Below, piece after piece: positions 751-41,094 of a stretch of DNA of 64,000 bases. The notes beneath the pieces were generated by a model, which saw nothing but the letters and a program-made list of their open reading frames with translations, searched no databases and was not told where the DNA came from. The stretch covers positions 62,001 through 126,000 of the IMG/VR virus record IMGVR_UViG_3300017971_000001, one strand, 5' to 3'. Both the position numbers and the translations under genes were made by a program. The first letter of the stretch is position 1, and the number at the start of each line of letters is the position of its first letter.

Positions 751-1389
751 TTATTCCTCTTCGGCATTTCGCTCCAATTCCTCTACCCTTTTCTTCATGG
801 ACGCGAACTCTCGGTAGAGATCGGCCGTCTCGTTGCTGATCAGGCCCCGGATCGCCTGCTGAAATGGATTGCCGTAAACCCAGTTGTGAGGACTGGACAT
901 GACCTCCGGGACCAGGGCGGCGAACGCCAGCCAGTTCAGCTGCTTCTGGGTGAAATCCCTGCCGGCCTCGAAGGCGTCACGGCGCTCGTGTCGATACAGA
1001 CCCTGATCCCGTTCAGCCCGAACGGGCTGAATGATCCCAGGGTTTACAAGAGGGGGGTTCACGTCGAACGAATCCAGGTTGTAGGTGACGTAGACCTCCT
1101 TCCCGTTTGCCTGCGCCGCCTGGCCGTCGTGCTCCGTGTACATTCCTTCGAAGGTCTCGTGCGTCCCTCCCCCGAGTTCCGGCTCGGGCAGCACCGATTC
1201 GATCGAATCTCCCTTCGGGCCGCAGACGATCCGCGCTAGGTTCGTCCAGCCAATCGCCTGGCCGACGATCGAGATTGCGTCGGCGCCGTTCGATCGCGAC
1301 CAGGAGCGGACGACGCGCTCGGCGAGCTCAGGGTCCGATCGATCCGCGAGCCACTCGTTAACCGCGTTCAAGAGATCGTCGTCGCTCAA
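751..1389 (-). CDS. Hypothetical protein
   Basis: TTG start overlaps the stop of the upstream peptide gene (TTGA); phage-like codon use. Confidence 0.7.
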   Translation of the reverse strand: MSDDDLLNAVNEWLADRSDPELAERVVRSWSRSNGADAISIVGQAIGWTNLARIVCGPKGDSIESVLPEPELGGGTHETFEGMYTEHDGQAAQANGKEVYVTYNLDSFDVNPPLVNPGIIQPVRAERDQGLYRHERRDAFEAGRDFTQKQLNWLAFAALVPEVMSSPHNWVYGNPFQQAIRGLISNETADLYREFASMKKRVEELERNAEEE

Positions 1390-3508
1390 AACCCCTCCAT
1401 GAGTTCTTCCGTGCGCGTATCCCAAAACAACTGGACCCAGTCGCCCATGTTTCCTTGATTCTTTCGTTGGTAGTCGGCCCAGAGCGTCGCGCTCCCCATG
1501 GTGAAGCTAATGCCAGAGGCGAACGTATAGGACGAAAAGGAGAAGTCGCTGAGCGAAAGGGAGAACCCTTTCCCAAGCCCTGCTGAATATGCAGAAGACA
1601 GCCCCCTGCCGTAGGCCAGAAAGCTGAGCAGGGGCCGGGGGCGAAGCCGGCGCCGTCGCCTCTTCATAGGAAGGCTGATCCCATGCGGTAGTTCAGGCCG
1701 GCACCCACGGGCGCTGATCGCTTCCAACTTTCAGAGCAGTCATAGGGAAAGCGGCCGGGTCTAAGCCTCCAGAACGACATGGAGCGGTTGCCCCCCTTCC
1801 CCCTGACCCGATCCTGACCCCAGCCAAGCGCGAACTGACTCGAGGGCGGGTGGTCACGAAGGTAGGTTCGACGGCGTCGTTTCAAGTCGCCAATCCGAAG
1901 AGTCGAGGCCGGCGAACCTGACTGGAACCCAACGCTTGCTCCAGCCCCCGGCCGAACGATAGCCCCCTGCCGCCTGCACTGCCTCGGGCAAAGTATCCGC
2001 CTTCTCCGCGCCGGCACTTACCCCTGCCAACAGGCCTCCAGATCCCGATCCCGCGTTGGGACCAAAAGAGGCAGCGTGCCTTGCTCTTGCGTCGCTTCAT
2101 TGCCAGAAAGACCTCGGGAAGGTCATGGCCCAACTCGCAGCGCGAAGCTGTCCCCTGCCCTGCCTCGAGAACAGGCCAGCCCCGCTGTGATAGATCGACG
2201 GGGTAGGGTCGAGCTCGGAAGAGCGCGTCCATGCCAGAGATTTTCCTATTCCCTTCCCCCTCATTCTGACCTTGGTGATCCGGCACCTATGCCTTCTCTT
2301 CATGCAGCGAGCCTCTTCGTCCAGGATCCTTCTCGTCCTAGACCAGCGCCCCACTTCATGATCAAGCCGCTGCCGAACCCATACCCCCAGAGAAGCAAGG
2401 AGGACCCACGGCCAAGCGCGGTTGACCTGCGAAGGCCTCGGCCCCGAAGGGAGGCCAGTCTATTTCTTCGGCGCCTGCTCATGGAAACATTCCAATTCCA
2501 AAAGGGATCCGAAATCCGTTGCCGACCGGGCGGCGCTGACCATGGCCGAGTGAAGAACGGCGGCGGCGGGCCAGGCCGCGCCCGAAACCTCGAGACAAGC
2601 CCTGACCCTTTCCTTTGTTGAGTCCTACGACCATTCGGAACCTTCGATCCCTACGCTTCATGCTGACCCATGGGACCGGCCTAGCCCAAAAGAGATCCAG
2701 AGATAGACCCCTGCGCCTACCGAGCACCTAAGTCCAGATCGGATCTCGCTGACGCCAGCGCCGAGCCCAACGTAAAGTCCCCGAGCTCGCTGTCGGTATC
2801 TCGATACGACAACGCTTGGCCTGCGACGACGCCTCACCAGATCCTCCTCCCCGGGCCCGCCAGGGAAATGCCGAGGCCGTAACCGAGGCTTCGCCCGACC
2901 CCTCTGTTCGCCCAAGCTCGAAACCTCCCGCGGCGGCGAGAGACGCCCCTCCCCATTCGGCCCCTAATGGCCGTGGCGTAGCGCCAATGAAGACAGCGGG
3001 GTCGACGCCTCTTCACTTGAACGGCCCTGCGAGCGCGTATCCAGATCCGTAGCCGGCGCCGCGTTTTGACATGATCATAGACCCCACCCCGACCGCCGTT
3101 CTCATTCCTGCTCCACGTCTGCGCCGGCTGCCCCAGCTAAGCTCCCAATGCACGGTATTCCTTCTGCGGCGCTTCACGGAAGCGCGCACCAGAATCTTCG
3201 CAGGCCCGAGCCGAAACTTTCCCACTCTCCCCGGCCTCGGTATCGCCGGAAGCCAGCCCCGAACGTCAAGCTCTGGCCGCTTACCGCGCGAATCCAGATC
3301 GACAGGTGGCGCTTCCGTCGCTTCACGGGTAACAGCCAATCCCGACGCCCTTCAGCGTTCCCTGGCCAGTGTTTCTCCAGGAGCCCGCCCCGAATGAACG
3401 CCTGAAAAGCCAGTGCCTCGTTCGAGACCCTCCGCCGGAAAAACAGGCTGTGCCGACGCCCAGGAGGTCCAAAGCGTAATTGAACGGAGGCCTTCTGCGT
3501 CGCTTCAC
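1386..3508 (-). other. Cluster A: 11 tandem MxRRRR / Gly-rich peptide genes
   Basis: Members (-): 3323-3508, 3174-3326, 3013-3177, 2834-3016, 2658-2837, 2479-2661, 2300-2482, 2097-2303, 1882-2100, 1664-1885, 1386-1667. Each begins (M/V/L)-x-R-rich run, carries GxG motifs and overlaps its neighbour by 4 nt. Confidence 0.85.
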
Positions 3509-3990
3509 AGGCGCCGCTCGAGCAACTTCGTGATCAGGCGCTCGACGCCGAGCTCGAGCCCGAGGCACACCGACTCTCGGTGGCCGGCGACGTTCAGCGT
3601 CCTGACGTCGTGACGCTCGATCAGGAGCTCGATCACGTCCAGCATTCCACCCGTGTGCCCGATCGCGACCAGATCGGGATCGAGGACGCGGACCGGGCGG
3701 CCCTCTTCGCGGCAGAAGCGCAGAGTCAACTTGCAGCCTCCCGAGAGGGGCATGCGCCCGAAGATCACGGTTGCGTCCCCCAGGCGGACGTTCTCTCGCG
3801 TGCGGGGAGGGTAGCCGCGCACGAGAAGTTCGACGAGCTCGGTGAAGCACGCAGGAACCTCGCCGTCCTCCGCGCGGCGGCCCTTGGGCACGAACCCGCC
3901 GTAAGGGGTTCCGAGCTTGAACGCGGCCGCGATCCCGCCGCGGTCGGCTCCGGTCTGCCCGCCGCTAACGATCTTCAGAAATCTCTTCAC
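3505..3990 (-). CDS. SLOG-superfamily / putative molybdenum-carrier-like protein
   Basis: KIVSGGQTGADRGG, PKGRRAEDG, YPPRTRENV..GDATVIF, TLNVAGHRES motifs. Confidence 0.85.
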   Translation of the reverse strand: MKRFLKIVSGGQTGADRGGIAAAFKLGTPYGGFVPKGRRAEDGEVPACFTELVELLVRGYPPRTRENVRLGDATVIFGRMPLSGGCKLTLRFCREEGRPVRVLDPDLVAIGHTGGMLDVIELLIERHDVRTLNVAGHRESVCLGLELGVERLITKLLERRL

Positions 3991-4522
3991 GTTCGTCCCA
4001 GAGGAATCCGTATTTGCGAAGAAGTTTCGGGAGGGCCTTATGTGCCGCTTCGGTCGCCCCCTCGAGCGTGCGGAAGCGGTGCGTTTCGGACCAGCCTTCA
4101 GGGCGACTCGAAGGGAAGTTCTCGTAGTCCCAGTCTCCGTCCTTGCTCAAGGCATGCCTTCCGGTGCGGACTGCCCAGAGGATCGATCCGTCCTCCTGGA
4201 CTGCACGGTCGATCACAATCCGATCGTGATCTCCGAACCGAGCGAGCTCGTACGAAAGCGGCACCGGCTCCGAATGGACGCTCTTGATCATGGACTCAAC
4301 CGTGCCCTCTTCGAAGTCCTTGACGGCGAAGTCGCGCATGGCGCTCTTGTCGGCGTCGTAGGCCCTGAGGAACAACTGCTCTTCCGGGTGCCATTCGGTA
4401 GACCCCGTCCAGAGTTTGATCGGAACGAACCAGCGCCAGTCGGTCTCGCCGCGGTGGTTCGTGTAGCGCCCTTTGTGAAACTGCTTCATGCGGAAGTTGG
4501 GGATCATGTCAGGGCCTTCCAA
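3965..4522 (-). CDS. WYL-like domain phage protein
   Basis: YTNHRGET..R...P..LW.GSTEWHPE.Q..L.A.D..K.A.RDF pattern; start uncertain. Confidence 0.55.
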   Translation of the reverse strand: MEGPDMIPNFRMKQFHKGRYTNHRGETDWRWFVPIKLWTGSTEWHPEEQLFLRAYDADKSAMRDFAVKDFEEGTVESMIKSVHSEPVPLSYELARFGDHDRIVIDRAVQEDGSILWAVRTGRHALSKDGDWDYENFPSSRPEGWSETHRFRTLEGATEAAHKALPKLLRKYGFLWDEREEISEDR

Positions 4523-4555
4523 CGTGAACTCCTTGCTGCTCCATGTCGTTCTTGT

Positions 4556-5089
4556 TCACGCCTTCTCCTTCAGGGCCCTGTCCAGCAGGTGTTCAGGGAC
4601 GTGCCAGCCGTGAGCCCAATGCTCAAGGCAGTTGGCGCAGGTGACCGACTCCCCAACGGTGACCCGGTGGGTCCTCCGCATGATCTTTGAGCTCAGGATC
4701 CACGGAGCCTTCGGGTCGACCACGAGAAAACTACGCATGCAAGAACGCATGGCGTCGACCGTCAAAACCTTTTCGCTGGATTGGTAAGGCTTGCAGATCC
4801 TGAACGCAGCGCGGTGGACGATTCTTCCCTTGGAGCTCTTCGCCGAGACGCCGATCAACGTTCTCGTATTTTGGGGGCGAGCGTCCGGATTGATCAATCC
4901 GTCAATCCTGAGCGGAACGCGCCGAAGGTTGAAGAGGAACTTCTCCTGGTCGGCGAGCTTCTTGGCCTCGGCGGCAGCGTGCCAGCGAGCGTTGAGTTCG
5001 TGCTCCACGGCCCCCTTTAGTCGATCAAGGTCTGCCTGAGAGAACGCGCTCAGGTGGCCAATGAACCGCGTGAGGTTGTAGTCCGTCAC
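4556..5089 (-). CDS. Hypothetical protein with C-terminal CxxC
   Basis: GTG start coupled to the DHFR stop. Confidence 0.6.
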   Translation of the reverse strand: MTDYNLTRFIGHLSAFSQADLDRLKGAVEHELNARWHAAAEAKKLADQEKFLFNLRRVPLRIDGLINPDARPQNTRTLIGVSAKSSKGRIVHRAAFRICKPYQSSEKVLTVDAMRSCMRSFLVVDPKAPWILSSKIMRRTHRVTVGESVTCANCLEHWAHGWHVPEHLLDRALKEKA

Positions 5090-5595
5090 TTGGAGCGCAC
5101 CCAGACCTCGAATTCCATATCGTGGTCGTCGTGCTTGCCGGCCGGCTCGCTCTTCCAAACCGTCCTGAACCAGTCGTCGTCGAGGAGTTCGCTGGGGAAG
5201 AAGGAGCCTCCGCCTTCGACCTCGGTCTTCACGACCGTGCGCAGAACCTTCGTCGCATGAGGAAAGGCAGCGCGGTAGATCTGCTCACCGCCGCAGACGA
5301 AGACCTTGCCGTCGCCGAGGACTTCCGCCAGGTCCAGCGCGCTGAGGATATCGGTCGAGACCATGACGCCCTCAGGGACCGGGTATTCGGCCCTGCGCGT
5401 CATGACGATCGTCTCCCGCCCCGGAAGCGGACGCGAGCCGATCGACTCCCAGGTCTTGCGCCCCATGATCAGCGGGCACCCAGCGGTCTTGCGCTTGAAG
5501 TACTTCAGATCGGAGCGCTGGTGCCACGGCATTTTTCCGCCCTTGCCGATCACGTCGTTCAAGGAGGCCGCGACGATCAGAATGACTTCAGACAT
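5086..5595 (-). CDS. folA: Dihydrofolate reductase
   Basis: LIVAASLNDVIGKGGKMPWH..SDLKYFK..T...LIMGRKTWESIG.RPLPGR..IV.TR and FVCGGEQIY motifs. Confidence 0.97.
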   Translation of the reverse strand: MSEVILIVAASLNDVIGKGGKMPWHQRSDLKYFKRKTAGCPLIMGRKTWESIGSRPLPGRETIVMTRRAEYPVPEGVMVSTDILSALDLAEVLGDGKVFVCGGEQIYRAAFPHATKVLRTVVKTEVEGGGSFFPSELLDDDWFRTVWKSEPAGKHDDHDMEFEVWVRSK

Positions 5596-6867: not shown

Positions 6868-6899
6868 GCCTCCCTCTTCGCTCTCAAAGCGCATGAACT

Positions 6900-9800
6900 T
6901 CAACGAACACCTCTGACGCACAAGAACCCTCGATCCGTTCCACGTCCGTGCGTCCTGATTTGCCCTCTGCCGAGGAATCTGGCAGGAATGAATCCGCAGG
7001 AAATGGAGCGCGCTAGACCACGAGACGTTCGCTGACCTCTGAATCCAGAGCTCGCGAACAAGCGGAAGCGTCGGCGGTGCCTGATCACGCGACAACCATA
7101 TCGAATGTCTCGGACATGTTCACGGAAAACATTGGTTCAACACGATTCCGCGAGACCCGACGATTCCGCGAGACCCGGCGACGCCGTTTCCGATCGAGCG
7201 ACTGAAACCGCACCCCTGACTGGCCCGTATGCTGAATTTCCTGAGAAGGGGATTCAAAGCGGACCCCTGCCCGGCTCCGACATAACGTCTAAGTCCATGC
7301 GATCGGCCCCGCTGTGTCCCAGGGGTCACTTGGACGTGAAACATGAAGTTGATACTCCGCTTCCTGCGATTCAGCGCAACTCCCTCACCGTCTTGCTCTG
7401 TCGGCCCTGAGTCCCCGCCCGCGGTTCCGCTGGAAACCGCAGCCATGGCGGGCCGTTCGATACAGCCTCCGGACCGGGTTTCCTGGTATTCCAAAGTCGT
7501 TCGTCGACCCCGATCCGATCGAGCAGCCCAGGCCCCTGGCGCGAACTCTTAGCCGCCTGGGCAGAGGCCCTCTCGTCATGCTTCTACAGCGCCTTCTTCT
7601 CACACCCACGAGGAGCACGTCCAACCTGAGGACCGAAGGAGGCCGAGTCCGTAAACTCGATTCTGAGCCCTGCCGAACATGGTGATCTCGATTGGCCAGC
7701 GACCCGTCAGGTCCGCATTCCCGACCGACCGGAGCAATCCGCGACCGCGAGTCCACTTCCTCAGGCGCCTCCTCCTCAAAACGGATCGAGTCCTAAGCCC
7801 CAGCTGAAGAAGTCGCCTCGGCCCTCAGGGCTTCTCATTCCGCTTCCTTGCGATCGGTGAAGGCCGAACGACCCGCCGAGCCTCAGTCCATACCCCATGA
7901 GCGCGGGGGTCAAGTTGGTCCGCAGGCGCCTGGATCGACTCATGTTCGTCCTGACCAGAGGCCAACATTTCTGAACAGGCCCGATCCAAACGACGCCGTC
8001 TGACCCGTCCCCAGAGATCGGTTGAAGAGGAATGTGTATCCAGGCGTTGGGCAGCCCCAGCCGTGACCTAGCTTCAGCCCGAACCCGAAAAAGTCATAGC
8101 GCGCCGCTCCGCGACACCTCCTACGATTCATTGAACAGGCCTCGAAAGCGGTGAGATCCAAAGCCCGAGACTCGACCCAGCCCGAGGCCGGCGGCGATTC
8201 GGACCAGAGTCCCGCCCCAGTTGGAGTAGGTGAAGCCCCATTCGCAGTGCGTGCCGGCGCCGAGGTTTCCCAGGCGTGCCGCGCCCTTATTTCTTCTCCG
8301 GCGCTTCATTCTGATCCCTGGCCGCACCCGAGGTCGTGATCAAGTCCAATTCCGGAGTGAAAGCCGACTGCCCGCGAGGGGACCTCCATGCACCCAGACC
8401 CGAATCCCCAGGCTCTATCTCGTCCGTAGCCCATGGCGCAGTCGCGTCCGATACCTCCGGGCGACAGTGAGAACCGCGCCCGTCGTCGGCGATTCCTCAT
8501 TGACCGCGCACCCCTCGCCCATAGTCGCAAAGCAGTCCGAGCCCGTAGAACGTTACCGTCGCCGCGACGCCCGGCGAGAGGGGAAGGCCTTCACCGAAGG
8601 CGACGCGAAGCCCAGTGGCTGCGTGGCGCCTCTGGCCGCGGCCTCTAATTGGCCCCCTGCAGACCACGACTTTTCGCCGGAGCCGCCGCGTCAACTTTCG
8701 ATCCCCTCGCCGCGGTAGAAAGCCAGTCCGTATCCCCACCACACTTTCTTGGTGCCCCTTGAGACACTTCCTCCCCCGACCGCAATTCTGAAGGGCCCTT
8801 TGATCCCGCCGACTCCCCAGCACTTCCAGGACCCATACCCGCAACGCATTCCATGAATGGAGAATAGATCGTCGGTCTTGGTGAAGAGGCCGCCCTGCGC
8901 TCGCCGTCGTCTTTTCATGGAACAGGAATCTCGAAAGTTAGAGTGATCACGCGCGGAGGCGCGATCCCGTTCGCAATCAGGGTCATGGTCGTCGTGCAGC
9001 GCGCGTTCCCCTGGCCGTTGCCTGCGAAGTATCGCAGTCCGCTCGAACCAGGAGCGAACACAGGGAACTTGCTGAAGCCTAGGCCGACTCTGCGGAGCTC
9101 GAGCCCGAGCGCTCGGAAGTGCCAGCCGGAGTGAATGCGGCGTCGTCTGCGGTTCATGGGAGAACGTAGTCTCCGAATCCGTAGTAGCGCGTCGTCTTCC
9201 AGTCAATCAGGGACCCCTTCTCGGACAAGGCGTCCGCGACCGCTGCGGGGGAAGGGTCGCTCGGAACGTAAAAAGTGACGAGCGGGGACTCCGCAGCCGG
9301 CCTCGCAGTCAACTCCCGTTCCTTCAGACTCGCCCTGGCCCGATCCGTCGAAGCTCCTGAGGCCCAGGCCTATGTTTTCCCATAGCCCGTAGCCAGAGGT
9401 CGAATAGGTTGCGTCGAGCCGAACTCGCCGTCGCCTCACCATGAGGAATCGCTCACGATCGCCATGCGGAGGTCAACGACACAGCGCTGAAGCCCGCAGC
9501 CCATAGAGAAAGCCCGAGAGGAACCAACAGCCCGCTCGGTGGACCTGCCCAAGAACCCGAGGCAGGTGTATTCCGCGTTCGACAGACCGCGGCCTAGTCC
9601 TTTGCCAATCCCAATGGACCAGCGCCTTTGGACCGCAGCAGCAATTCTGGATCTTCTCTTCATATCGACCAACACGTTTCGCGCATAAGGCCCCGCCCGA
9701 TCATGGACTCGCAGCCCGAGCTCAACTCGTCGGGGAAAAAGCAGGCGCGTCCGAACGTCAACCCAAATAGACTCCCTCCCGACCCGAAGGAGCTTCGCTG

Positions 9801-10439
9801 GCCCGTGGCCGGCTCGAGCTTCCCGCCGCGGTAGTAGAAGAACGTGACCCGGCGCCTCTTGCGGCTCACCATGCCCTCGACCGGCTGACGCCGACACCGG
9901 ACGATCTCATGGCCCCGCTGCCGATACATGACCTCATGAACAGACCATGAATTCGAAGTCCATGGCCATACGACGCCCTCAAGCCTCCGCCCGACGACTT
10001 TATGTGAATGAGGTGTCGCTTTCGACGAATCATGGAATTTTGAGCCTGACCCTTCCTAGTCCGCAGTAGAGACCGGTGGCAATGCTGCGACCCAGGGCAA
10101 CGCCTGCTCGATTGGAAACAAAGAAAAAGGGGGTTCGTGTAACCCCTCTCCCAAAGACTCGGCTGCAGCCAAACCCAGACCCAAACCCAGACCCGCGGAG
10201 CCCGAGCGCGCCGCCCTTGTATCTTCGACGCCTCATACCGGAGTCCTCAGAGCCATGCCACTGCTCGACCTCCAGGCGCCGTGGCCAACCCTGGCACCGC
10301 AGCCGACTCCAGTGTGCGCGCAGCCCGAGAACCTCTTCAGGCCACGGCCGTTCAGGCCTCTGCCCCGGAGGCAATTGAGCCCCCAGCTGACGTTGAGCGC
10401 AGCGCGCGCCTCAATTCGGCTCCTCCTCCTGCGCCTCAC
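6900..10439 (-). other. Cluster B: 17 tandem MxRRRR / Gly-rich peptide genes
   Basis: Members (-): 10233-10439, 10030-10236, 9866-10033, 9660-9872, 9436-9663, 9203-9442, 8915-9157, 8691-8918, 8497-8694, 8306-8500, 8121-8309, 7940-8131, 7776-7943, 7600-7779, 7385-7603, 7120-7374 (CTG start?), 6900-7088. Confidence 0.85.
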
Positions 10440-10444
10440 CTACC

Positions 10445-11252: not shown

Positions 11253-11255
11253 GCC

Positions 11256-11462: not shown

Positions 11463-11737
11463 GCCCCGACTCCTTCCGCGGACTTCACGGAGCCGATCAA
11501 AGCGGCGAGACTGCCCTCGATCCCGGGCACGGCCTCGAGCGCACCCTTGACCGTCTCGTCCCAGCCATTGACGCGCTTCTCGATCTCACCCTCGAGCGCG
11601 AAAATGATCGGGTTCGGCAGGTCGCTGCCGATCTCGATCTTGGTGCGCCGAATGGCGATCGCCGTCAGGGCCTGCATGGCCTTGACCTTCTCCTGCTCAA
11701 GCGACGCCTCAGCGCGCCTGCGTTCCTGTTCGTTCAT
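11459..11737 (-). CDS. Hypothetical protein
   Basis: ATG overlaps the stop of the upstream peptide gene. Confidence 0.65.
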   Translation of the reverse strand: MNEQERRRAEASLEQEKVKAMQALTAIAIRRTKIEIGSDLPNPIIFALEGEIEKRVNGWDETVKGALEAVPGIEGSLAALIGSVKSAEGVGA

Positions 11738-12844
11738 TCTGATCTCCTGTAGCGAGAGATTCCCCGGAGGAGTCCATGCCCTCTCGAGAATCCCGTGGTG
11801 TTTCTTTGAAAGCCCCTAGACAGCCAAGGCCTCGGCCACGCTTTCCCGACTCTGAGCCCGACTCCGAATCGGAAGCCGCCTGCACCCGGAGCCCTTCTCC
11901 TTAGACGCCTCACCTGACGCCGTACCAGCCGGTGCCGAGATATCGACTTCGGAAGGATCCTACCGAATACCAGCGACCGAACCCCTGGCTGAACTCAAGG
12001 CCGAGGCCGTTTGCGTAATCGAGCCCGAAGCAAACCTCCTGGCAGACGCGTCCGTGGCGAATCCTCCTCACCGATAGCCCCAAACATGGCCCTTGCTTCG
12101 ATAGCAACCGAGGCCATACGGTCTGCCGCCCCCGGCGCCCAAGCCAGAGAAGGCCCCGGACCCGAAGTGGTAGCCAACCCCAAACCCAACGAGCACGATC
12201 GATCGATACCTTCGAGGAAAAACGAACGACCTAGACCTCCTGTTTCGCAAACGATTCAATCAAGTCCTCAATACGGCGTGTAGTTGCCTTCGTCCCCTCG
12301 GCCCTGAGCCCTCTCTAGCCCAGTTCCCCTCCACCTCGGGTAACGGCCTTCTGGCCGACAGCCCCGCCCAGCAAAAACGCTGAGCAGGCCGCAGCCGAAG
12401 CCGAACATAAGCCCGCAGCAGATCGCGTCCGAAGAGGCATACGAGAACCTTTTCCTGCGCCTCAAGGAACGAGCCTTCCCAGCGCGTATCCGTTTTCCCT
12501 GTCGAGCCCGGTGCCGACCGAGACCGTGGGAAAGTAATGGCCGACGCCTCTAGCAAGGCCGATCGCTTTCCAGCAAGAGAATCGACTCAATCCGTACCCC
12601 TGCCACGTTGTCAAAATGCACACGCACGAAGGCCTTCGCCTGCGCCTCACCGGAATGACTTTCCGCCCATGCCCCTGCCTAGACCTCTGCCCCGAAACGA
12701 CGTCACGAACGAGTGAGCATTGAGCAGGCCCATTCCGATCAGGTTCTTGACACCGGACCCAAAGGCTGCTTCGGTCCCGGACCCGTATCCGTGCCCGCTC
12801 GGGAAGTTGTTGAACCTCAGGCGCTTCCTCCCTGCCCTCAGCAC
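11734..12844 (-). other. Cluster C: 6 tandem Arg-leader / Gly-rich peptide genes
   Basis: Members (-): 12647-12844, 12462-12650, 12268-12465, 12068-12259, 11910-12071, 11734-11913. Confidence 0.8.
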
Positions 12845-30962: not shown

Positions 30963-32471
30963 TTACCGACACCGAGGGTAGTGCCTCCAGCCCGCCTTGC
31001 CCTTGCGGGAGCAGGCGCGCTCCCCCGGAGGGATCCGCCCCTTGCAGTGAATGCAGCGAATGCCGTAGTTGCCGCCGAGCGTGATCACGTTGTGATCGTC
31101 TTCGGGCGCCCCGCCAACCTCCCGGACCAACTTGCCGACGTCGTCCATGGGCTCGGTGCCGAGCGTATTCGCCTCGCTGCTGCGAACAGCGTCGTACAGC
31201 TGATCGATCAGATCAACAGCAGCCTCGAAGGAAAGCGGCAGGCTGTAGTTCTCGCCGACCAGTCGAGCGACGCCCGCAGACGATTGCACCCTGATCTTTC
31301 CCGGCTGCACGACGAAGAACGAGCCGCGGGGAGTCTTGAACTCCCTGTCTTCGTTCGCGACCTTTTCCAGGTGCAGGTTTGCCGCGTGCAGCTGCTCCTG
31401 CAGCTTGACGATCTCCGCGTTCCGGGCCTCGACCTTAGCGCTCCACTCGAGCGCGGCGTCCGCCCACTCCTTCGCGCCGAGCTCGAGCTCGCTCTTCCAC
31501 TTCAGAGCCTGGCTCGCCCAGTGCTGCTCGTCCCTGACGTAGTCTTCCCGGATCTTCGCATTCTGAGAGAGCAGGCGGCGCACTTCGTCGACGTGCTTCT
31601 CGTTACTGGTCTCGTGACCAACGGCGCACAGCCGACGTTCGAGGGCCCGAGTGCGTTCAAGCTGCCACCGCTGATTCGCTACTGCGCGCTTCCTCTCGCG
31701 GTCCAGCTGCTTGAGGGCAGCGTCGCGGTCGCCGCGCGCCTCCTCGAGGAGCGCCTTGAACATGTCGCGGCGGGACTCGGCGTGAGCGAGCTTGGCCTTG
31801 AGATTTTCGATCTCGCTCTTGGGCTCTTCTCCGGCCAGCGCGGCAGCCAGAGCGTTCCAATCGTCCCCGATAGCGCGGACCATTTCGTCCCACTGATCCT
31901 CGTGAACGTACAGCTTCCGCGGCGTTCCGAGTCCCCGCCCCCGCTCCTCGAGCCAAGCGCCGATCTTGCGCTTTCCCGACGGAAAGGCCTCTTTGTGAAT
32001 TCCAGTCACGGCCGCGGGGCACCAGTCCGACCCCGGAAAGCGGCAGAGCAAGTGGTCGCCAATCGAAACGTCCTGAAGAGGCGGCGCGCCGCAACCGCGA
32101 ACGATCAGCGGGTTCTCCCACTGCTCTTGAGCGACGGAGGTCATGACATTGTCGAAGGAGCGGAGCTCGAAGCTCACGTCGGTGTATCCGTTCACGCGGA
32201 ACAGCTTCCACTGACCCAAGACGTTGTATTCGACGACGTCGCCGACCTTGACGTCTTCCCACTTCGGAGGCTCGATCCTCTTAGGAAGGAGAACGAACCT
32301 TTCCTCAGTCGAGTGCCACCGCTTCGACTTGTCGATCGGGTCGATCAGCGTCAGGTCGCTGTTCCGCACGGTGTCCACGACCGCGATCCGCCAGCTTCTC
32401 TCCTCGGTTCGATACTTGACCCGATCGCCCGCCTTCAGGTCCCTGCCCTTGACCGTGCTCATTTGACTCAT
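30963..32471 (-). CDS. Protein with three Tudor/Agenet/SH3-like repeats and a long coiled coil
   Basis: LKAGDRVKY..E.SWRIAVV, VKVGDVVEY...GQWKLFRV, VSIGDHLLCRFPGSDWCPAAVTGI; C-terminal CxxC; ATG overlaps the stop of a peptide gene. Confidence 0.65.
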   Translation of the reverse strand: MSQMSTVKGRDLKAGDRVKYRTEERSWRIAVVDTVRNSDLTLIDPIDKSKRWHSTEERFVLLPKRIEPPKWEDVKVGDVVEYNVLGQWKLFRVNGYTDVSFELRSFDNVMTSVAQEQWENPLIVRGCGAPPLQDVSIGDHLLCRFPGSDWCPAAVTGIHKEAFPSGKRKIGAWLEERGRGLGTPRKLYVHEDQWDEMVRAIGDDWNALAAALAGEEPKSEIENLKAKLAHAESRRDMFKALLEEARGDRDAALKQLDRERKRAVANQRWQLERTRALERRLCAVGHETSNEKHVDEVRRLLSQNAKIREDYVRDEQHWASQALKWKSELELGAKEWADAALEWSAKVEARNAEIVKLQEQLHAANLHLEKVANEDREFKTPRGSFFVVQPGKIRVQSSAGVARLVGENYSLPLSFEAAVDLIDQLYDAVRSSEANTLGTEPMDDVGKLVREVGGAPEDDHNVITLGGNYGIRCIHCKGRIPPGERACSRKGKAGWRHYPRCR

Positions 32472-33232
32472 ACCCCGAATCCTCTCTCGAGGAACTGCCC
32501 GCGACCAAATTCGCGGCGTGTCCACCTGTTACCCCACCTGTCGGAAAACCTAACAACCGACAGCGACCCAAATCCAAAACGGAGACCCTCGCCGTAGCGA
32601 AAGCCTTGTCCGAACCCATTGGTCCGAACCCCCCAGCACGCCTGGTAACGCCGGCGCCTGATCACCGATTCCCGCCCGCAGCGCTGCCGACACCGACGCC
32701 GCATGCCTTGCCAAGTCCCCCCCGAGACGGAAGCGAGTTGCTGCCGCTGCCGGAGATCCTGCTCTGAGCGACTCCGAACCTCGCTCCGTTGCCAGCCGAG
32801 AACTCGACTGCGACCAAGGCCAGCCTCCTCCTCCGCGTTCTCTTCATGCGTCCTCGAAGTGCCGAATGACGAAGTGGAATCCGAGGACCCCGAAGAGGAA
32901 GCCGAACGATCGGACCGAGGCCGGAAGCACGCAGAGCATGAGCACGCACCACCAGGCTCCGATCGTGCAGATCGTGTTCACCGCTTGTTTCTGCTGAGCG
33001 GTCACGGCGAAGACCACTGCGACGAGAATTGACGGTGAACAAGGCCGCCGCCGTCGCGATAACGAAAGCTCGTGATCCCCAGGGTCCGGTACATGCCCCT
33101 GCCTCGAATGCGCGGGAAGGCCAGCTTGGCGAAGCGCCGCCCTCCAGAAGAAAAGTTGAGTCCAGATCCAATCCTCCGCCGGTGGTCCAGGGAGTACCAG
33201 AAGAAAAGCATTCGGCGCCGCCTCCTCAGCAT
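32468..33232 (-). other. Cluster F: 3 Arg-leader / Gly-rich peptide genes
   Basis: Members (-): 33002-33232, 32662-32847, 32468-32665; small TM ORF 32844-32981 in between. Confidence 0.8.
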
Positions 33233-34138: not shown

Positions 34139-34346
34139 TTTCGAATTCCTTTGCGTTTACCTGATCCGCCAAAGAGGACCGCACCCCTTGCGATCACGAG
34201 AGATATGTATACACGAAGAATCTCTTGTAGACAACGTCAGACTTCGCTGATATTGTTCTGCCTCGCAAGTCAAGGGGCGTCGTGTCCGGCTCCGGTGTGG
34301 TGTCGATCCTTCGCCCTCTTTCAAACGCTCAAGCAAGGAGAAAGCA
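34139..34346. promoter_or_regulatory. Divergent promoter region with paired operator-like palindromes
   Basis: Strand-switch point; TGTATACA (34206-34213) and TGTAGACA (34226-34233), 20 bp apart. Confidence 0.5.
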
Positions 34347-34748
34347 ATGAGCGACAAGCGGATTCGGGAACTGGAAAAGGCCGCGGCCGGCGGCGATACG
34401 GACGCGGCGGCTGAGCTCGAGCGCGTGCGCAGCAGGTCCTTCCAGGACCCCATGACGGCCTACTTCTCCAAGTTCATTGGGAAGGAGATCTATATCGAGG
34501 GAGCTCGCATGAACTACCTCGGCAAGCTCCTCGGCGTCGCCCAGGCGCCCGACGGCCAGCCGACCGGCCTGCTCATGTCGCCGATCCAGCGCGTCGGTGA
34601 CTGGAGCCGCACCGGCCCCGACCACGAGCACGTCATGGAAATGCCCTCGAGCGAGGAGCTCCCCGGGCTGATCCCGACGGCCGCGATCGACCAGTTCAGC
34701 GAGGCTCCGAAGGGCTGGCTGCGCCCCGTCGAGAACAACTTCGGCTAG
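34347..34748 (+). CDS. Putative Sm/LSm(Hfq)-fold protein with SDxRIRELE N-terminal module
   Basis: AAGGAG SD; very high GC3; FSKFIGKEIYIEGARMNYLGKLLGV...LLM (Sm1-like) and GLIPTAAIDQF (Sm2-like). Confidence 0.6.
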   Translation: MSDKRIRELEKAAAGGDTDAAAELERVRSRSFQDPMTAYFSKFIGKEIYIEGARMNYLGKLLGVAQAPDGQPTGLLMSPIQRVGDWSRTGPDHEHVMEMPSSEELPGLIPTAAIDQFSEAPKGWLRPVENNFG

Positions 34749-34788
34749 GCCGAGAACACAGCTTCGGTTGTCCCCCGAGGTGTCCCCT

Positions 34789-34838
34789 GAAGCGCCCGCC
34801 GGCCACGCTCCCCCTCGTGCCGGCGGGCGCTTCTCTTT
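34789..34838 (+). terminator. Intrinsic terminator / attenuator hairpin
   Basis: GAAGCGCCCGCCGG...CCGGCGGGCGCTTC followed by TCTTT, between the Sm-like gene and cluster G. Confidence 0.65.
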
Positions 34839-36378
34839 AGAAGGTATCGCATGAATCGCCGACGCAGGAACAATGCCGCCTTCGATTTCTCGCCTAAGAA
34901 TTGGCGCTGGTGTGAAGGTCTAGGCTGGGGGCTCGGACGGTCGCTGGGATCCGGAGTGAATGATTCGCGGGGAGTCGGGCAAGGATTCGCTGCATTCGAC
35001 AAACTCGAGTTCGACTACTGGCGCTGGGAGTCCATGTCCGACGAGTGTCTGGCCGGCTTTCTTGAAAGCGTTGAGTGACCCGACGCAGAAGACGAATGAT
35101 CTACTACAGCAGCGGAGTCGGCCTTATGTCCCCGCGCCGGCGAGGTGAAGGTGAACCCTGCGGCGCCGGCCTCGGCCTCGGCAGAGGAAGAGCTCTTCTT
35201 CAGGGCGGGTACGCACTCTTGCTGTTTCCACACCGACCTGAGAGCGGCTGGGGGTTGGGTGCCGACTGCGGCTGGGGTGTGGAGTATCTGTGAGGCGACG
35301 CAGGCGCGCTTATGGACGGGTTTTTAGCACCTGGCTCGGAATCGGACAGACCAGGTTCGCAGGATCTGCTCAACGCCTGGCCGTTGGGATCGGCCGGAGT
35401 GAATACATAGGGCACGGCATGGGAATCGGAATCGGGAGGGGGTCATGAAGCGAATCAGGCGACGCGGCGGCCTCTCGATCGACTTCTCGCCCAAGCGCCC
35501 GCTGGATTGTGAAGGGTGGGGCGTAAAGAGAGCGCTCGGCGCAGGGTCGGCCAGCGTCCGCGGAGTCGGTCTCATGGTCGCTGACTTCGGTTGCATTGAG
35601 TCGCTTGGGCCCTCTGTTCTTGGAGATAACTTCGAATGGCTTGGCTGGGAAGGGCTCTCAGACGAAGTGCTCCAAGCAGAGATCGAATCACTGGAGGAAT
35701 CCACTTGAGGCGGATCCGCCATGCAAGGCTTATCGGGCAGACTGGTATCGGCGTCGACTTCGGCGTGGGGACGGGCGTCGAGGACTGGCAGGAGCTCCAA
35801 ATTGGAGTCGGGGCCGGGATCTACCATTGGTGCTCCTGGCTCAGGTGGACCCAATGAAGCGAAGGAGGCGAGTCTTTTTCTTGAACACCCGGCTCGCAGG
35901 GCAGTGGAGGAGAGTCGGCGCTGGCTGTGCGAGCCTCTTCGGCAGCGGGACGCCAGGTCGGTATCAAGTCGTGCGTGGCTGGGGCCTCGGCTATGCAGAC
36001 GGTTCGAGGTAGTCATGACCAGACGGCGAAGAAGAAACGTTGGCCAAGTTGGCTGGGGGTTAGAGATCGCAGAAGGGATAGGGACGGGAGAATTCCCGCC
36101 TAATTATTCATGCGGGAGAGGACTCGACTTCGAGCATGGCTACTTCCTCCTCTAGGCGGGGCCGGGTTTCTTCCGAGGAGCGCAACTGTAATGCGTCGGC
36201 GAAGAAGGCGGGTTGTCTACTATGCAGGCGCGTCGGGCTGCATGATCGTGACCGGAAGGGCAGAGGCAAGGCCGAGAGGGTCCGGCCTTGGCTTCAATCG
36301 ATCTCCGCCCCAGCAAGGACAGCTAACGAGCGGGGGCTGGGGACTGAATGCCGACTGCGGCTGGGGACTGGAGTACCC

Positions 36379-36591
36379 ATGAGTATCAAGAAAGCCAGAC
36401 TCGATCACGCGGCGCGGAACGATCACAGTTGCTGCACCCGGCTTCCGGGCGAGAACTTCCACACAGAAGAGTGCCCGGTCTGCGGACGGCTCATGCTGGT
36501 CAGCAGGGCGCTCGTCTTCAAGTGCATGGGGATTGGGTTCTTCCTCGGCGCGTTCGCGGGCAGCGCGGTCATGGAATGGGCGACTTCGTGA
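36379..36591 (+). CDS. Small Zn-ribbon/TM protein embedded in cluster G
   Basis: MSIKKA...CPVCG...TM tail; coupled on both sides. Confidence 0.6.
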   Translation: MSIKKARLDHAARNDHSCCTRLPGENFHTEECPVCGRLMLVSRALVFKCMGIGFFLGAFAGSAVMEWATS

Positions 36592-38368
36592 CCCGAAGAA
36601 GGAGGAGGCTTATCAGCAGCGCGGCTGGCTGGTGTTGCGGAGAATTCTGCAAGCCGTTCGGCGTCGGTGTCTACACGGACATTGGAGTCGGGGCGACTAC
36701 GGACGCGGTCGGTCGAGGAACTCGATCCGCATACGGTCACGGACAGCGCAGAAAGGGCTGGTCGTGAAGCGGCGTCGGCGCATGATCAGCTGCTACAAGA
36801 TCTCAGAGCGAGGGCTCGATCGGTTCAACGGGGCGGTCAGGCACCGAAAAGGTGAGTGGGGTGGGCTGCGGTCTGCAGTAACCGCGTTCGGAAGGCTGTC
36901 GATCGTAGGCATGGGGTTCGGCCTCGGTCGAAGGAACGGATTTTTTTGGTAAGGCGAAGGAGACACTCGAGGGGTGAATGGAGATCTCGCGGAAGGGGGC
37001 TCGGACGCTACTCGATCCAGGGTCGGTGGCGTTTCTACTACCCGCCCATTTACCCCTACCGCGCCCTCCCCAGGGGAGTCGAAATCGCCGCAGCCGTTGG
37101 CTGGGGCGCGGGTCACGCCAATGGATACGGTGGACGCAGGCGGTCGCATTGAAGAGGAAGAGGCACAACCGATCGCTTGGATTCTACCTCGGGTCGTCTG
37201 GGGCCGGCGGTCCACGCCACAGACGGCGCCGCCCGAAGGGCCGAGTCTACGGAGCCGGTTTCAGAATCTCCATTGCGTGGGGCAGTCTGGGAGGCGCTCC
37301 CTGCGTAGTGTCCGGAGGGCTCGGTTACTCGGTCGGCACCGCAGGAAACAGGCACCCTTCCTGCGAATTTGGGTTCGGTTTGAACTGCTTGTCATGAAGC
37401 GACCGCGACGACGATACCGAGTCCCCGACGTTCACCTCCCGCTCGAGCTCGACGCGTTCGGCTGGGGACTGCGCTGCTTCGGGCAAACTCGCTGGGACTG
37501 GTTCGACGAGCTCGTGGTTGGAGGGCTGGGCTTGAGGCGAAAGACAGGCGCCGGTCAACGGCGCTGCGCAGGCGTTCACCACAGGCCAGACGAGTGGCCG
37601 CCGAGATCGCACGAGGTCATTTTCTAAATGAAGAGATCGAGGCGGAGGTATCGCGTTCACGACGCAAACTCGTTCGGCCAGCCTGACTCCTACGGCTGGG
37701 CCATGGACGGATTCGGTCAGCTGGACTGGCGCTGGTACGACCCCATGTATGTCGAGGGGAGGGGCCTCGGGCGGAAGTTGGGAGACGGGCTGTGGTATGG
37801 AGCGGGGGCGTCTCGACTCAACCGGCGCTACACGCTCATGTACGAGGGGCCTGAATGAGAAGGCGGCGCAGAATGCCCCAGATTCGATTCAACTGCCCTG
37901 AGTCCGCAGGGTTCGGGCTGAATGAATCGGGCTTGAATTCGTGGTGGTCTCGTCAGCCTCCGCGGGGAAGCGGGCTATGGCTGCCGGTAGGGCTGGCGTG
38001 CTGGTCATGAAGCGTCGTCGACGGATCGGCAACCCCTGCTGCAGCCACATGCGTGGATACGGCCTGAGGAAAACGCTGAGCGTTGGGCTCTGTCCTTTGG
38101 TCTGGGATCGATTGAAGTCCCTTGAATCGGGGCGAGGTTTGGTCCACGCGTTCGGCTGGGGGATCGAATGAAGCGCAGGCGGAAATGCAGGCGGCCGAAG
38201 AGGTTCGTCTCGACGGGGCTCACTCCCTATCACTGGATCAACCTCGAGCGAGGCGTTGGGCTAAGGTGTTTTGTTGGGTCCGGGGTCATATCCTCTTGGG
38301 GTGACTATGTGATCGGCAGGAACCCCTCTCAAGCATGAAGTGAAACGCACAAACAAGGAGGAACTGGA

Positions 38369-38791
38369 ATGACGAAAGCGAACAAAGAGGTCCCCGGGGA
38401 TCTCGCGAAATTGATCCACTGCTACACCGGGCCGGGGGTCGCCCTCTACGCTCAGACGCAGCGAGGCGAGAAGAGCCGGCTGCCGAGGGAGCGCCTGGAG
38501 GAACTCGTCGAGGAGGGTTGGCTCTCGGCTCACGATCGATCGTTCGCTGAAGGCTGGGACGGGGAAGAGGAAGAGATCGCTCCCGAGTTCGAAGACGGGA
38601 GGTGGTGGAACCCCGGCACCGGCGACGAGATCCCCGCCGAGAAAGTCTACCGCTCCTACCTGACTCTTCCGGCGGCCCACGAAACGCACGCAGCAAAGCT
38701 GGCTCGACTCGAGCGCCTGCGGAGCCGAGTCCGCGAGACGCTCGACGAGATCGCCGCCCTGGAGCAAGAACTCGGAATTCAGGGCGAGTGA
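38369..38791 (+). CDS. Hypothetical protein embedded in cluster G
   Basis: AAGGAGG SD, high GC3. Confidence 0.75.
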   Translation: MTKANKEVPGDLAKLIHCYTGPGVALYAQTQRGEKSRLPRERLEELVEEGWLSAHDRSFAEGWDGEEEEIAPEFEDGRWWNPGTGDEIPAEKVYRSYLTLPAAHETHAAKLARLERLRSRVRETLDEIAALEQELGIQGE

Positions 38792-41094
38792 GGCGGCACA
38801 GACTGCGATTCTGCAGACGGAAAGACGCTGGCGTCGGACTGCGCTACGCCATGAGCGGCATGCAGCACTTCGCGCCGCACCCATTCATGCTCGTGAGGTT
38901 GCACGTCATTGGACGAGGGGTCGGACGAGGCTATGTGGGCCAGGACGCGTCCCTGCGGCCCGATCCGAGCCGCGCCCTGAGGCGGGGCGTATGAGCCGTC
39001 GTCGCAGAACCTTCTGGCTCTTTGTGGACGGAGGTCTGGGCAAGGGCCTGGGCGACAACCACGCCGCCGGCGCCGAGTGCGACGCGTGGGAGCTCGGCGA
39101 ACTCGGGTTCGACATTGACCTCCCCTTCGAGGGAAGCGGGCTGCGCCGATCGTGCGGCTGGGGAATCGAGGGGCTGGGTCCGTGGTGAGGCGGCGCAAGC
39201 GAAGGAAGTGGTTCTTCACGGACGCCGGCGTCGGGCGCGGGGCTCAGGCCCGCCACGGAATTGGACTTGAGTACATGCCCTCGTCCATGGAAGGGTGCGG
39301 GCTGTGGCGCCCTTGGGCTGGGGGAACGAATGAGGCGGAGAAGAAGGCCGGCGGGCGTCATTTCGGACGAACTCATGATCGGACTCGGGCTGGGCGACGA
39401 GATCGGCGGCGGTCAGTTCTGGGGAGCCGGGATCGGTTTGCGCCGTGGCTGGGGATCGTGGCGATCCAAGTCGGTCGCCCTGGAGGCCTTTGCTCTATGA
39501 GGCGACGCAGGAGAGTGAAGACCGGCATGCTTTGGGACTGGGAGATTGGAGTCGGGCTCGAGGGGACGGGCGGATTGCTCAATTACGCGCACGGCCTGCT
39601 GAGTTACATGTCGACCGCTTGGATCAGCTACAGCGGGCGAGGTGATTGCCGCGGGCTCGGTGAAGGAGATCCGCGTTGAAGCGAGGAAGGCGAGTGAAGA
39701 CCGGGATCCTCCATTCGAAGGAAATCTCCGCGGGAATGATCAGTTACCAATGTATCCATTACGGAAGAGGGCTTAGGAACCACCTATCCCCTTGGCGCAC
39801 ATTCTTCTATCGAAGCCGTGGGCTTGGTAAATGGTGAGGCGCAGGCGACTGGCAATCCTCGGCCTCGATAGCATGGAGGCCGTCGCCCTCATGACGGGAG
39901 AGGGCAAGATTGCGCCAGCCGACGAGCTCGGCGGCGAGGTCGGATACGGTCTGCTGGTCGAGGCTGGCTACGGTCACGCGACGACCAAAGGGAATAGCTA
40001 TCTGCGCTGCACGGGACGAGGTTTGAGGAAGAGCGTGTCTGGAGGCATTCGATCATGGTAAGGCGGAGGCGAAGGCTGAACTCCGGTTACTACTGGGGCG
40101 TCGCCGGGGCCGGGTTCGGCCGGCTGGTTGGCTGGGGGGCCTCTATCGCAATTGGGGAATCCGCAGAGCGCAACGTGGGAATCGGTGTCGGCGGTGGCGT
40201 CATGCCTTCCGGCGCTGCTTTGATCGACGCGGGGTGGCGGTGGTAAAGAGGCGTCGGCGCAGGCCGTTACCTGCGATCATTTTCTGCGCCGCTGGCGCAG
40301 GAGCGAACACCCACTCGGAATTCAATCGGCGGGACTTTGGCCTGGGGCAGCAGTCAGAGATCGGGTTCGCAAGAACGGGTCGAGACTCGTGCCTGGGCGG
40401 GGCCGGTTTCTCGGTATCGATCGGAGCAGGGATCGTCTCCGGGGCCGGGAAGGCCCTCACCGGTCACTACTGGGGGTACCTGTGAAAAGGCGGCGCAGGA
40501 CCATTCTCTCGAGCTTCTGCAGCTGGTTCTATCCGAAGCGGCGGGTCATGGGGCGAGGCCGCAGGCGGTACGTTGGAACCGGCCGGAACAAGCGGCCTGG
40601 GGTGCCTACGGCCTGGGGCGACGGGCAGTATCAGTGCCTCGCGATCGGCGTCGATCGAGCCACGGGCTTCGGGCGGGGGTCCTTTCATTGAGACGGCGCC
40701 GCTACCGCATTCACTACACTCGCTACCTCCAGCGCGGAGGGCCCTACCGCGGCTGCGGTCAAACGTTCTGCGTCGGCGTCTCGAACCTCGACTTCTTCAG
40801 GATCGGATCTGGAATGGGCTGCGGTAGAGAGTCGGGTCGCGCACAGCAGCGAGACGTCGGCGGGTCGTTCCAATGAATCGGCGCCGTAGGCGGCGGGCGG
40901 TTCAAACTCCGTTCTTTGGTCCCTGCTCTTCAGGGCTGCGGCGAATCACAGGAGCCGCCATTACCGGGAGGTTTCATTACCGATACGTTGCTGGCTGCGG
41001 AGTTGGTGTATGCTTCGCGCGCCCTCCGAACCTAAGATCCTTCCAATTCACCCCCTGGCCGATCTCTGGCCGCCGCCCTAGTTAGGAGAGCCGC

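Follow-up and report, generated by a model that had tools for sequence, protein, structure and literature searches.

What is encoded in the long blocks of tiny reading frames that fill much of one part of a huge phage genome, and are these frames genes at all? The question concerns a 64,000-nt window, the whole stretch of DNA analysed here, which corresponds to positions 62,001–126,000 of IMGVR_UViG_3300017971_000001, an uncultivated huge phage with a genome of 245 kb and 62% GC. The initial annotation, made from the sequence alone, described about 88 short ORFs in this window, which start with an Arg run, continue as Gly/Arg-rich bodies and follow each other head to tail. That observation is confirmed exactly: a walk along the local coding strand that kept only tiling ORFs recovered 88 units in arrays of 11, 17, 6, 7, 14, 3 and 29 plus one singleton, with the counts and end coordinates given before. 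The units cover 17,419 nt in total, about 7% of the phage genome, with a median length of 63 aa (46–93 aa); standard gene callers mostly miss them.

On the minus strand, the first array (1386–3508) contains 11 tiled units and is coupled by a GTGA overlap to the upstream cpYpsA gene (3505–3990); only the last of its units was called by the source's gene caller. It is followed by arrays of 17 (6900–10439) and 6 (11734–12844) tiled units, the latter not covered by any sequence of a relative, and by the group of seven, which consists of a single unit (17406–17615) coupled by GTGA to an ordinary 76-aa membrane-type gene (17612–17842) that separates it from the next six units (17839–18899). A singleton unit (21057–21242), an array of 14 tiled units (25430–28354) and three units (32468–33232) upstream of a 499-aa coiled-coil gene (30963–32462) complete the minus-strand set. 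The largest array, with 29 units, lies on the plus strand (34851–41085) and is interrupted by two ordinary genes (36379–36591 and 38369–38791). The minus-strand and plus-strand blocks diverge from an intergenic region (34139–34346) where the GC skew changes sign and where one sigma-70-like match, a consensus match only, lies at 34228–34256 (+). Between the 133-aa gene and the first unit of the 29-unit array there is a GC-rich hairpin followed by a T-run (34790–34838, +), which may be a terminator or attenuator.

The units have a common plan, with the family consensus MxRRRR-x12-GxGLxRxxGxG-x11-GxG-x5-GxG. The leader is M-x-R(3-6); nearly all units have at least four R/K in residues 2–9, and the Arg codons are a mix of CGN and AGR. 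Start codons are 42 ATG, 35 GTG and 11 TTG, and 74 of 88 stops are TGA. Of 77 same-strand neighbour gaps among the 79 units found by the first regular-expression search, 55 are overlaps, 43 of them of exactly 4 nt and the rest of 7–13 nt; most units tile through ATGA/GTGA/TTGA overlaps. The composition is 17.4% G, 16.8% R, 8.5% S, 10.8% F+W+Y and 4.6% D+E, the median pI is 11.8 and the median net charge is +10. GxG occurs 381 times, against 181 ± 11 in residue shuffles, while GG occurs 68 times, against 183 ± 11; the unit at 35290–35448, singled out in the initial annotation, does have 12 Gly and 10 Arg in 52 residues. A match of at least 4 nt to the SD core lies upstream of 55% of units, against 26% at random positions and 67% for ordinary genes, so the earlier statement that such a sequence is usually present is a little generous. 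Chance is excluded as the source of the arrays: other phage-like loci of 64–66% GC hold 0–2 such ORFs per 9–20 kb and none with the Gly motifs, and about 5 of the 84 regular-expression hits in the window are chance ORFs outside the arrays.

A comparison with three contigs of a related phage, designated here L006, L186 and L188, clearly indicates that the units are real protein-coding genes. The ORFs, leaders and overlap junctions are conserved in these contigs, at roughly 70–76% nucleotide identity over the L006 segment. The counterpart of the first array in L188 (8994–11079) also has 11 units, which give 10 reciprocal-best pairs; the 17-unit array has a 17-unit counterpart in L188 (1573–5110), with 15 reciprocal-best pairs of 46–94% amino acid identity; the 29-unit array corresponds to only 17 units in L186, 15 of them in reciprocal-best pairs. 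Orthologous pairs of the six units at 17839–18899 with L006 give omega values of 0.07, 0.12, 0.24 and 0.37 (a fifth is saturated), and L006 carries one whole extra unit (5427–5579). One unit of this group (18360–18551, −) has a 1-nt frameshift relative to its orthologue L006 5576–5758; in the DNA alignment the leader frame loses the Gly motifs, while the body frame still ends in the GTGA junction at 18367, and the unit is either a decaying copy or an assembly error. The hairpin upstream of the 29-unit array is conserved as well; L186 3908–4012 aligns with it by eye and has a longer T-run.

Over 45 reciprocal-best pairs (2,670 codons), pS is 0.63 and pN is 0.25, giving a pN/pS of 0.40 in the ORF frame, whereas the other sense frames give 1.22 and 1.37 and two antisense frames give 1.17 and 1.52; the antisense frame that shares third positions gives 0.54, but has 3.1 stops per 100 codons, against 0 in the ORF frame. 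The comparison rests on one related lineage, and dS is near saturation, so the per-gene omega values are rough. Mismatch by codon position is 0.30/0.24/0.51, against 0.16/0.12/0.34 for 35 ordinary genes, whose pN/pS is 0.31. Synonymous codon usage (RSCU) correlates with that of the phage's ordinary genes at r = 0.92 in the ORF frame and 0.37–0.87 in the others, and the motif glycines use all four GGN codons. The closest paralogues checked (eight pairs) have saturated dS with omega below 1, so these are old copies and not a recent DNA repeat. Some features did point the other way: GC3 is only 0.69 against 0.83 in ordinary genes, GC2 is high at 0.61, the codon-model score is about 0, and the source's gene caller skipped most of the units, its calls covering about 9 of the 45 relative units.

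Database searches did not reveal any family to which these proteins could belong. Of 71 members scanned one by one, a single hit to Pfam-A was found (Monellin, E = 0.081, regarded as noise) and none to PHROGs; a profile search of PDB chains gave best E-values of 7.4–8.4, to RCC1; no match was found among 1.84 billion protein representatives. DNA pattern scans of IMG/VR and GTDB found the architecture in no other record, the metagenome scan being a partial one. Rfam and ARAGORN searches gave no hit in the arrays, the only hits being two tRNAs at 58.3–58.7 kb, and no tandem DNA repeat was found.

The interpretation offered in the initial annotation is supported in part. Its claims that the constraint is on the peptide rather than on a DNA repeat, that a constant basic leader is joined to a diversified body, and that no named family has this architecture are supported, and the outcomes it had named as refuting were not observed: dN/dS is well below 1, the ORFs are intact in a relative and there is no hit to a characterised family. 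Its suggestion that the product of 34347–34748 is an Sm-like shared partner is not supported, since this protein has no Pfam or NCBIfam hit, including to an LSM domain, and the protein database search found only the protein itself, although a direct comparison with L186 does find an ORF 92% identical to it. The functional options it listed (specificity subunits or ligands for a shared partner, condensate-forming or nucleic-acid-coating peptides, anti-defence decoys or cationic toxins, and RiPP-like precursors) remain hypotheses; the residue-specific conservation argues against a purely composition-driven role, and no RiPP-type enzyme was seen among the neighbours examined.

What the analysis shows, and of this we are very confident, is a lineage-specific, massively expanded family of at least 88 real and selected protein-coding genes, placed inside long co-directional operons; their very basic products share the Arg run, a spacer of about 12 residues and two pairs of alternating-glycine motifs, and the residues around this plan differ between paralogues but are kept between orthologues. 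Expression and function, on the other hand, are inferred from sequence alone, without direct evidence of translation. The genes are most likely expressed by termination–reinitiation coupling, since in most junctions the start codon overlaps the previous stop and ordinary genes are joined in the same way; one mRNA should then yield many different peptides in roughly fixed proportions. As to function, the explanation we prefer, though only tentatively and as less likely than not, is that the peptides are non-globular and probably fold only on a partner, that the shared Arg run would anchor each of them to a polyanion, most likely RNA or DNA, and that the Gly/Trp/Arg-based body would make flat, extended contacts whose variable positions give each paralogue its own preference. 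In this view, the arrays would be a diversified bank of ligands for related targets, whether host or phage nucleic acids or nucleic-acid-handling machines, and the gain and loss of whole units suggests an arms-race or host-adaptation role.

Charge and pI are consistent with such a role. Two AlphaFold2 runs, with family alignments of 71 and 135 sequences, gave pLDDT values of 59 and 50 and no secondary structure, although failure to fold short, shallowly aligned peptides is weak evidence for disorder. Between orthologues, Gly is 0.85 conserved (0.89 for the Gly of GxG), Trp 0.80 and Arg 0.69, but Ile/Val/Ala only 0.42–0.47 and Cys 0.61, compared with 0.59–0.65 and 0.81 in ordinary genes, meaning that there is no conserved aliphatic core; the strong G-x-G alternation with GG avoided also fits. 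Even the least conserved residue classes stay 39–50% identical between orthologues at pS 0.63, which speaks for specificity rather than bulk. However, no target, RNA motif or partner has been identified, classical RGG boxes are almost absent, no G-patch, KH or other nucleic-acid-binding profile matches, and a basic, Trp/Arg-rich composition fits membrane-active peptides or binding to acidic proteins equally well. Perhaps the phage carries a new kind of combinatorial system, a co-translated library of about 90 diversified cationic microproteins on one Gly/Arg/Trp scaffold, each recognising a different nucleic-acid or nucleoprotein target (for example, host RNAs, ribosomes or defence nucleases), with whole units swapped in and out as hosts change; this would amount to a peptide-based counterpart of a spacer or guide library, but it is an unlikely reading on present evidence, albeit not an excluded one.

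Among the alternatives, the one that survives best, though unlikely, is a bank of anti-defence or host-takeover proteins sharing a delivery or anchoring leader, where the poly-Arg N-terminus would tie each peptide to the phage DNA or target it into the capsid, and each body would block a different host enzyme. The constant leader with diverse bodies, the turnover of whole units between relatives (29 versus 17) and the nonsynonymous change, faster than in ordinary genes (pN 0.25 versus 0.14), agree with it; but all members share one scaffold, not only a leader, and the arrays lie among nucleotide-metabolism and small early-type genes (DHFR, cpYpsA), not among head genes. Somewhat less likely is a bulk polycation or condensate former, in which only composition would matter, with Arg and aromatic stickers and Gly/Ser spacers, and many diverged copies would raise the dose for charge neutralisation or for a phase-separated compartment. 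The composition, the lack of a predicted fold, the preferential conservation of Gly, Trp and Arg and the co-expression that coupling would give all fit, but conservation between orthologues is position-specific (up to 94% amino acid identity at pS 0.39, omega 0.05–0.3 for many units), the motif spacing is fixed, and the closest paralogue pairs checked are old and kept apart rather than homogenised.

Membrane-active cationic peptides used for lysis, superinfection exclusion or killing of competitors seem improbable: the net charge, Trp at 3.1% and Phe at 4.8% would suit them, but reading of the translations showed no signal peptide or long hydrophobic stretch, GRAVY is −0.47, no lysis genes were seen among the neighbours checked, and eighty-eight copies, apparently not in a lysis-type context, would be toxic to the host before progeny are made. 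RiPP-like precursors with a short shared leader and hypervariable cores, processed, on the model of the prochlorosin system, by one promiscuous enzyme encoded outside the window, are about as improbable; many diverse small proteins with a common N-terminus would suit them, but the conserved part is only about 6 residues, much shorter than typical recognition leaders, no Cys/Ser/Thr pattern is conserved (Cys 0.61, Ser 0.53), the Gly motifs are spread through the supposed core, and no maturation-enzyme domain or recognition element turned up in the 24 larger neighbouring proteins scanned within these 64 kb of the 245-kb genome. The reading that the units are not genes, but chance or off-frame ORFs of GC-rich DNA or a nucleic-acid-level repeat with G at every third base, is very unlikely, given the frame-specific purifying selection, the highest divergence at third positions, the codon usage, the conserved tiling and the presence of stops of all three kinds in the other frames.

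The family is a clear case of a large block of real genes left blank by standard annotation and hence almost absent from protein databases, and gene deserts in other huge phages may hide similar content. No phage known to us devotes about 7% of its genome to about 90 paralogues of one microprotein, and the combination of poly-Arg leader, alternating-Gly scaffold and stop–start coupling has no described counterpart. The units are short enough to synthesise, orthologue/paralogue contrasts say which residues to change, and unit turnover between two relatives points to a host-interaction role.

Comparison with known systems shows partial resemblances only. The glycine-spaced motifs are superficially similar to those of RCC1-like and G-patch proteins, and RCC1 repeats were the top, non-significant, PDB profile hits, but none of 71 members matched either family in Pfam at E ≤ 0.1 (PF01585 for G-patch), and AlphaFold2, in runs that did not include assemblies of several peptides, predicted no strands, whereas an RCC1 propeller blade would be four-stranded. 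T-even phage internal proteins (IPI-III and the polymorphic IP locus) are likewise small phage proteins with a short conserved N-terminal leader and highly diverse bodies, encoded by a locus that varies between related phages; they are described as a highly diverse set of defence proteins that share only a capsid targeting sequence, with a proposed role against host defences (PMC3012670). The capsid targeting sequence of T4-type internal proteins is removed by the prohead protease, and the proteins are present inside the virion and ejected with the DNA. Their bodies, however, are unrelated folds, whereas here all 88 members share a Gly-motif scaffold, the leader, judged from the alignment, is a plain Arg run, there are tens of copies in coupled arrays rather than a handful, and no evidence of packaging exists. 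Prochlorosin-type RiPP precursor libraries also comprise dozens of small precursor genes in one genome, with a constant N-terminal part and a hypervariable remainder, but the leader here is far shorter, no modifying enzyme was found among the proteins scanned, and conserved motifs run through the whole peptide. The arginine-rich-motif peptides of phage antiterminators (lambda N type) and the basic N-terminal arms of small-virus capsid proteins have an N-terminal Arg-rich stretch on an otherwise disordered small protein that binds nucleic acid and folds on binding; those are single-copy genes, there is no sequence similarity, and the alternating-Gly body has no counterpart in them. RGG/RG (GAR) low-complexity RNA-binding regions are similarly Gly/Arg/aromatic-rich, non-globular and basic, but in the phage family the RGG triplet occurs only 5 times in 88 units, RG occurs 1.6 times per unit but as G-R-G inside GxG motifs, GG is avoided and the G-x-G spacing is fixed; these are discrete, position-conserved proteins and not low-complexity tails.

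The window has a GC content of 62% and belongs to an uncultivated huge phage, the genome of which is represented by the record IMGVR_UViG_3300017971_000001 (245,276 bp) and is also assembled as an ENA contig of 245,035 bp. The window equals positions 62,001-126,000 of that record, an offset that was checked by locating loci in the window. A megablast search against 50,697 INPHARED phage records revealed no match. The window encodes an integrase, DHFR, a cpYpsA protein and a 694-aa protein with a Cas12f-type TNB domain and a weak TnpB-family match. The gene of the latter protein adjoins a CRISPR-like array (51250-51950 and 51948-54032, minus strand, for the array and the protein) composed of at least 10 copies of a 36-nt repeat with spacers of about 30-43 nt, and the locus looks like a compact type V-like CRISPR-Cas carried by the phage. 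Two tRNA genes, tRNA-Thr(TGT) and tRNA-Glu(TTC), are located at 58354-58426 and 58584-58657 (plus strand); searches for known RNAs found none in the arrays of small genes. Ribosomal L7/L12-like, NT5C, DHFR, cpYpsA (SLOG) and DUF1643 genes (positions 13427-14080 and 16333-16920 of the sequence L001, to the left of the window, the L7/L12-like gene lying just outside it; window positions 5086-5595, 3505-3990 and 28525-29064) flank or separate the arrays. One more ORF with a leader and GxG motifs lies at about 20173 of L001, about 6.2 kb to the left of window position 1, so the family may extend beyond the window.

A regular-expression search for start codons followed by an Arg run found 84 ORFs, about five of which are chance ORFs outside the arrays, and a walk keeping only tiling ORFs on the local coding strand gave 88 units. 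These units fall in groups of 11, 17, 6, 7, 14, 3 and 29, plus one singleton, from 1386 to 41085; the observation made in the initial annotation, which had listed the same groups, is thus confirmed. Of 77 neighbour gaps among the first 79 units, 43 are overlaps of 4 nt and 12 are overlaps of 7-13 nt; the starts are ATG (42), GTG (35) and TTG (11), and TGA ends 74 of the 88 units. The Arg run mixes CGN and AGR codons; over all 88 units AGA and AGG make up 39% of Arg codons, against 13% in ordinary genes, and the coding strand is G-rich (GC skew about +0.15). Ordinary acidic genes fill the space between the arrays and are joined to the units by the same overlaps. Other high-GC phage-like loci carry 0-2 leader-type ORFs per 9-20 kb, none of them with the Gly motifs. 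A scan for promoters and terminators showed no enrichment over shuffled sequences, but a GC-rich hairpin with a T-run, conserved between the window (34790-34838, plus strand) and the related contig L186 (about 3950-4005), lies between the gene of a 133-aa protein and the first unit of the 29-unit array and may be a terminator or attenuator controlling entry into the array.

Composition alone does not settle the coding status of the units. Their GC1/2/3 values are 0.57/0.61/0.69, against about 0.64/0.43/0.83 for ordinary genes; a codon model trained on ordinary genes scores the units near zero, although their own frame is the best of six in 73%, and the public gene calls skip most of them. Other evidence from within the genome points to coding: synonymous codon choice in the ORF frame tracks that of ordinary genes (r = 0.92, other frames 0.37-0.87), and the conserved glycines use all four GGN codons. 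Recoding of a stop codon does not explain the pattern, since TAA, TAG and TGA all occur in the other frames and no long ORF appears if any one of them is read through. TRF finds no tandem DNA repeat in the arrays, and paralogues are at most about 53% identical in protein sequence.

The decisive evidence is comparative. Searches in IMG/VR with a 520-aa protein, the 133-aa protein and one unit found only the same UViG, the 133-aa protein has no database homologue, and the nearest homologues of the cpYpsA protein are 53-54% identical, the two looked up lying in loci without arrays. However, a profile of 71 members searched against 1.84 billion protein representatives found, apart from the window's own products, one protein (P0005) from a Logan assembly, and a word-indexed search found two more. 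Their contigs, designated L006, L186 and L188 (from SRR17165170 and SRR17165187), belong to a relative at roughly 70-76% nucleotide identity over the L006 segment and are syntenic with the window regions about 24-17.8 kb, about 31-46 kb and about 12-0 kb. The relative has the same arrays with the same leaders and overlap junctions. The integrase and two neighbouring genes (44730-48220) are 93-99% identical in amino acid sequence to those of L186, whereas most other shared genes are 50-90% identical, which suggests a recent exchange of this module.

Forty-five reciprocal-best pairs of units were obtained, and pooled values were calculated over the 44 pairs with at least 40% amino acid identity (2670 codons). 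In the ORF frame pS is 0.63, pN is 0.25 and pN/pS is 0.40, with no stops. The sense +1 frame gives pS 0.30, pN 0.37 and pN/pS 1.22, with 4.0 stops per 100 codons, and the sense +2 frame gives 0.27, 0.37 and 1.37, with 1.6 stops. For the antisense frames, the corresponding values are 0.31, 0.36 and 1.17 (1.3 stops per 100 codons) for shift 0, 0.52, 0.28 and 0.54 (3.1 stops) for shift 1, which shares third positions, and 0.25, 0.38 and 1.52 (2.9 stops) for shift 2. Antisense coding was therefore rejected on account of the stops in the frame sharing third positions, and the units are not off-frame shadows of ordinary acidic genes, since no other frame is open or selected. Divergence by codon position is 0.30/0.24/0.51, while 35 ordinary genes from the same contigs give 0.16/0.12/0.34 and a pN/pS of 0.31; omega per unit is mostly 0.05-0.45. 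Because dS is close to saturation, individual omega values are rough, but the frame contrast is robust. The units are therefore protein-coding and under purifying selection, and they evolve about twice as fast as ordinary genes at nonsynonymous sites.

Two alignments of the family (A1 and A2) give a consensus of MxRRRR, about 12 residues, GxGLxRxxGxG, about 11 residues and GxG-x5-GxG-xxR. The spacing of GxG peaks at 2, 6 and 8 residues; GxG is twice as frequent as in shuffled sequences and GG is three times rarer. The composition is 17.4% G, 16.8% R and 10.8% aromatic residues, with a median pI of 11.8 and a median net charge of +10. Three units (34851-35078, 35445-35708 and 1386-1667) carry an extra acidic, Trp/Leu-containing C-terminal tail, unlike the rest of the family, which may be a docking motif. 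The eight closest pairs of paralogues checked have saturated dS and omega below 1; the expansion is therefore old and the copies are individually maintained. Between orthologues, the best-kept residues are Gly (0.85, and 0.89 within GxG), Trp (0.80) and Arg (0.69), while Ile, Val, Ala and Cys are kept much less than in ordinary genes of similar divergence; the leader is 0.76 conserved. AlphaFold2 modelling with alignments of 71 and 135 sequences gave pLDDT values of 59 and 50 and no secondary structure, so that neither run provided a structure to search with.

The 11-unit and 17-unit arrays are nearly one-to-one between the two phages (11 versus 11 and 17 versus 17 units, with a few units lacking a reciprocal-best match), but the plus-strand array has 29 units in the window and 17 in the relative, and L006 has a whole extra unit. 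The unit at 18360-18551 (minus strand) carries a 1-nt deletion relative to its orthologue at 5576-5758 of L006; the leader frame then reads an acidic peptide without the Gly motifs, while the old body frame still ends at the GTGA junction, and this unit is either a decaying copy or an assembly error.

Neither Pfam nor PHROGs contains a matching family, and no PDB chain matches (best E about 7, RCC1). DNA pattern scans for two or three spaced leaders found arrays only in this contig among 2.9 million IMG/VR contigs (two patterns) and none among the GTDB species genomes; in metagenomes the scan, which is not exhaustive, returned at least 120 stretches, and none of these 120 had a leader plus Gly motifs. 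Literature searches found no description of such arrays. The interpretation offered in the initial annotation is partly supported: its core inference of a real, undescribed family constrained at the peptide level is supported, but the protein it had proposed as an Sm-like shared partner has no domain hit and no database homologue other than itself.

While the coding status of the units and the selection acting on them are shown by the comparison of the two phages, their mode of expression, binding properties and function are inferred from sequence only. The overlap junctions indicate termination-reinitiation coupling, so each operon should deliver sets of 3-29 different peptides together. The peptides lack a conserved aliphatic core and any predicted fold, keep Gly, Trp and Arg and carry a poly-Arg N-terminus; they are therefore tentatively read as extended binders of a polyanion, most likely nucleic acid, that order on binding. 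The residue-specific conservation of each orthologue, together with wide differences between paralogues, suggests distinct preferences rather than a bulk charge effect. The rival readings cannot be excluded on present evidence: perhaps the units form an anti-defence bank with a delivery leader, although this is unlikely, and a bulk condensate or polycation is less likely still. Membrane-active peptides and, last, RiPP precursors remain only remote possibilities. The closest functional analogy is the T-even internal-protein set, described as diverse defence proteins that share only a capsid targeting sequence (PMC3012670); this is an analogy rather than an assignment to that family, from which the units differ in their shared scaffold.
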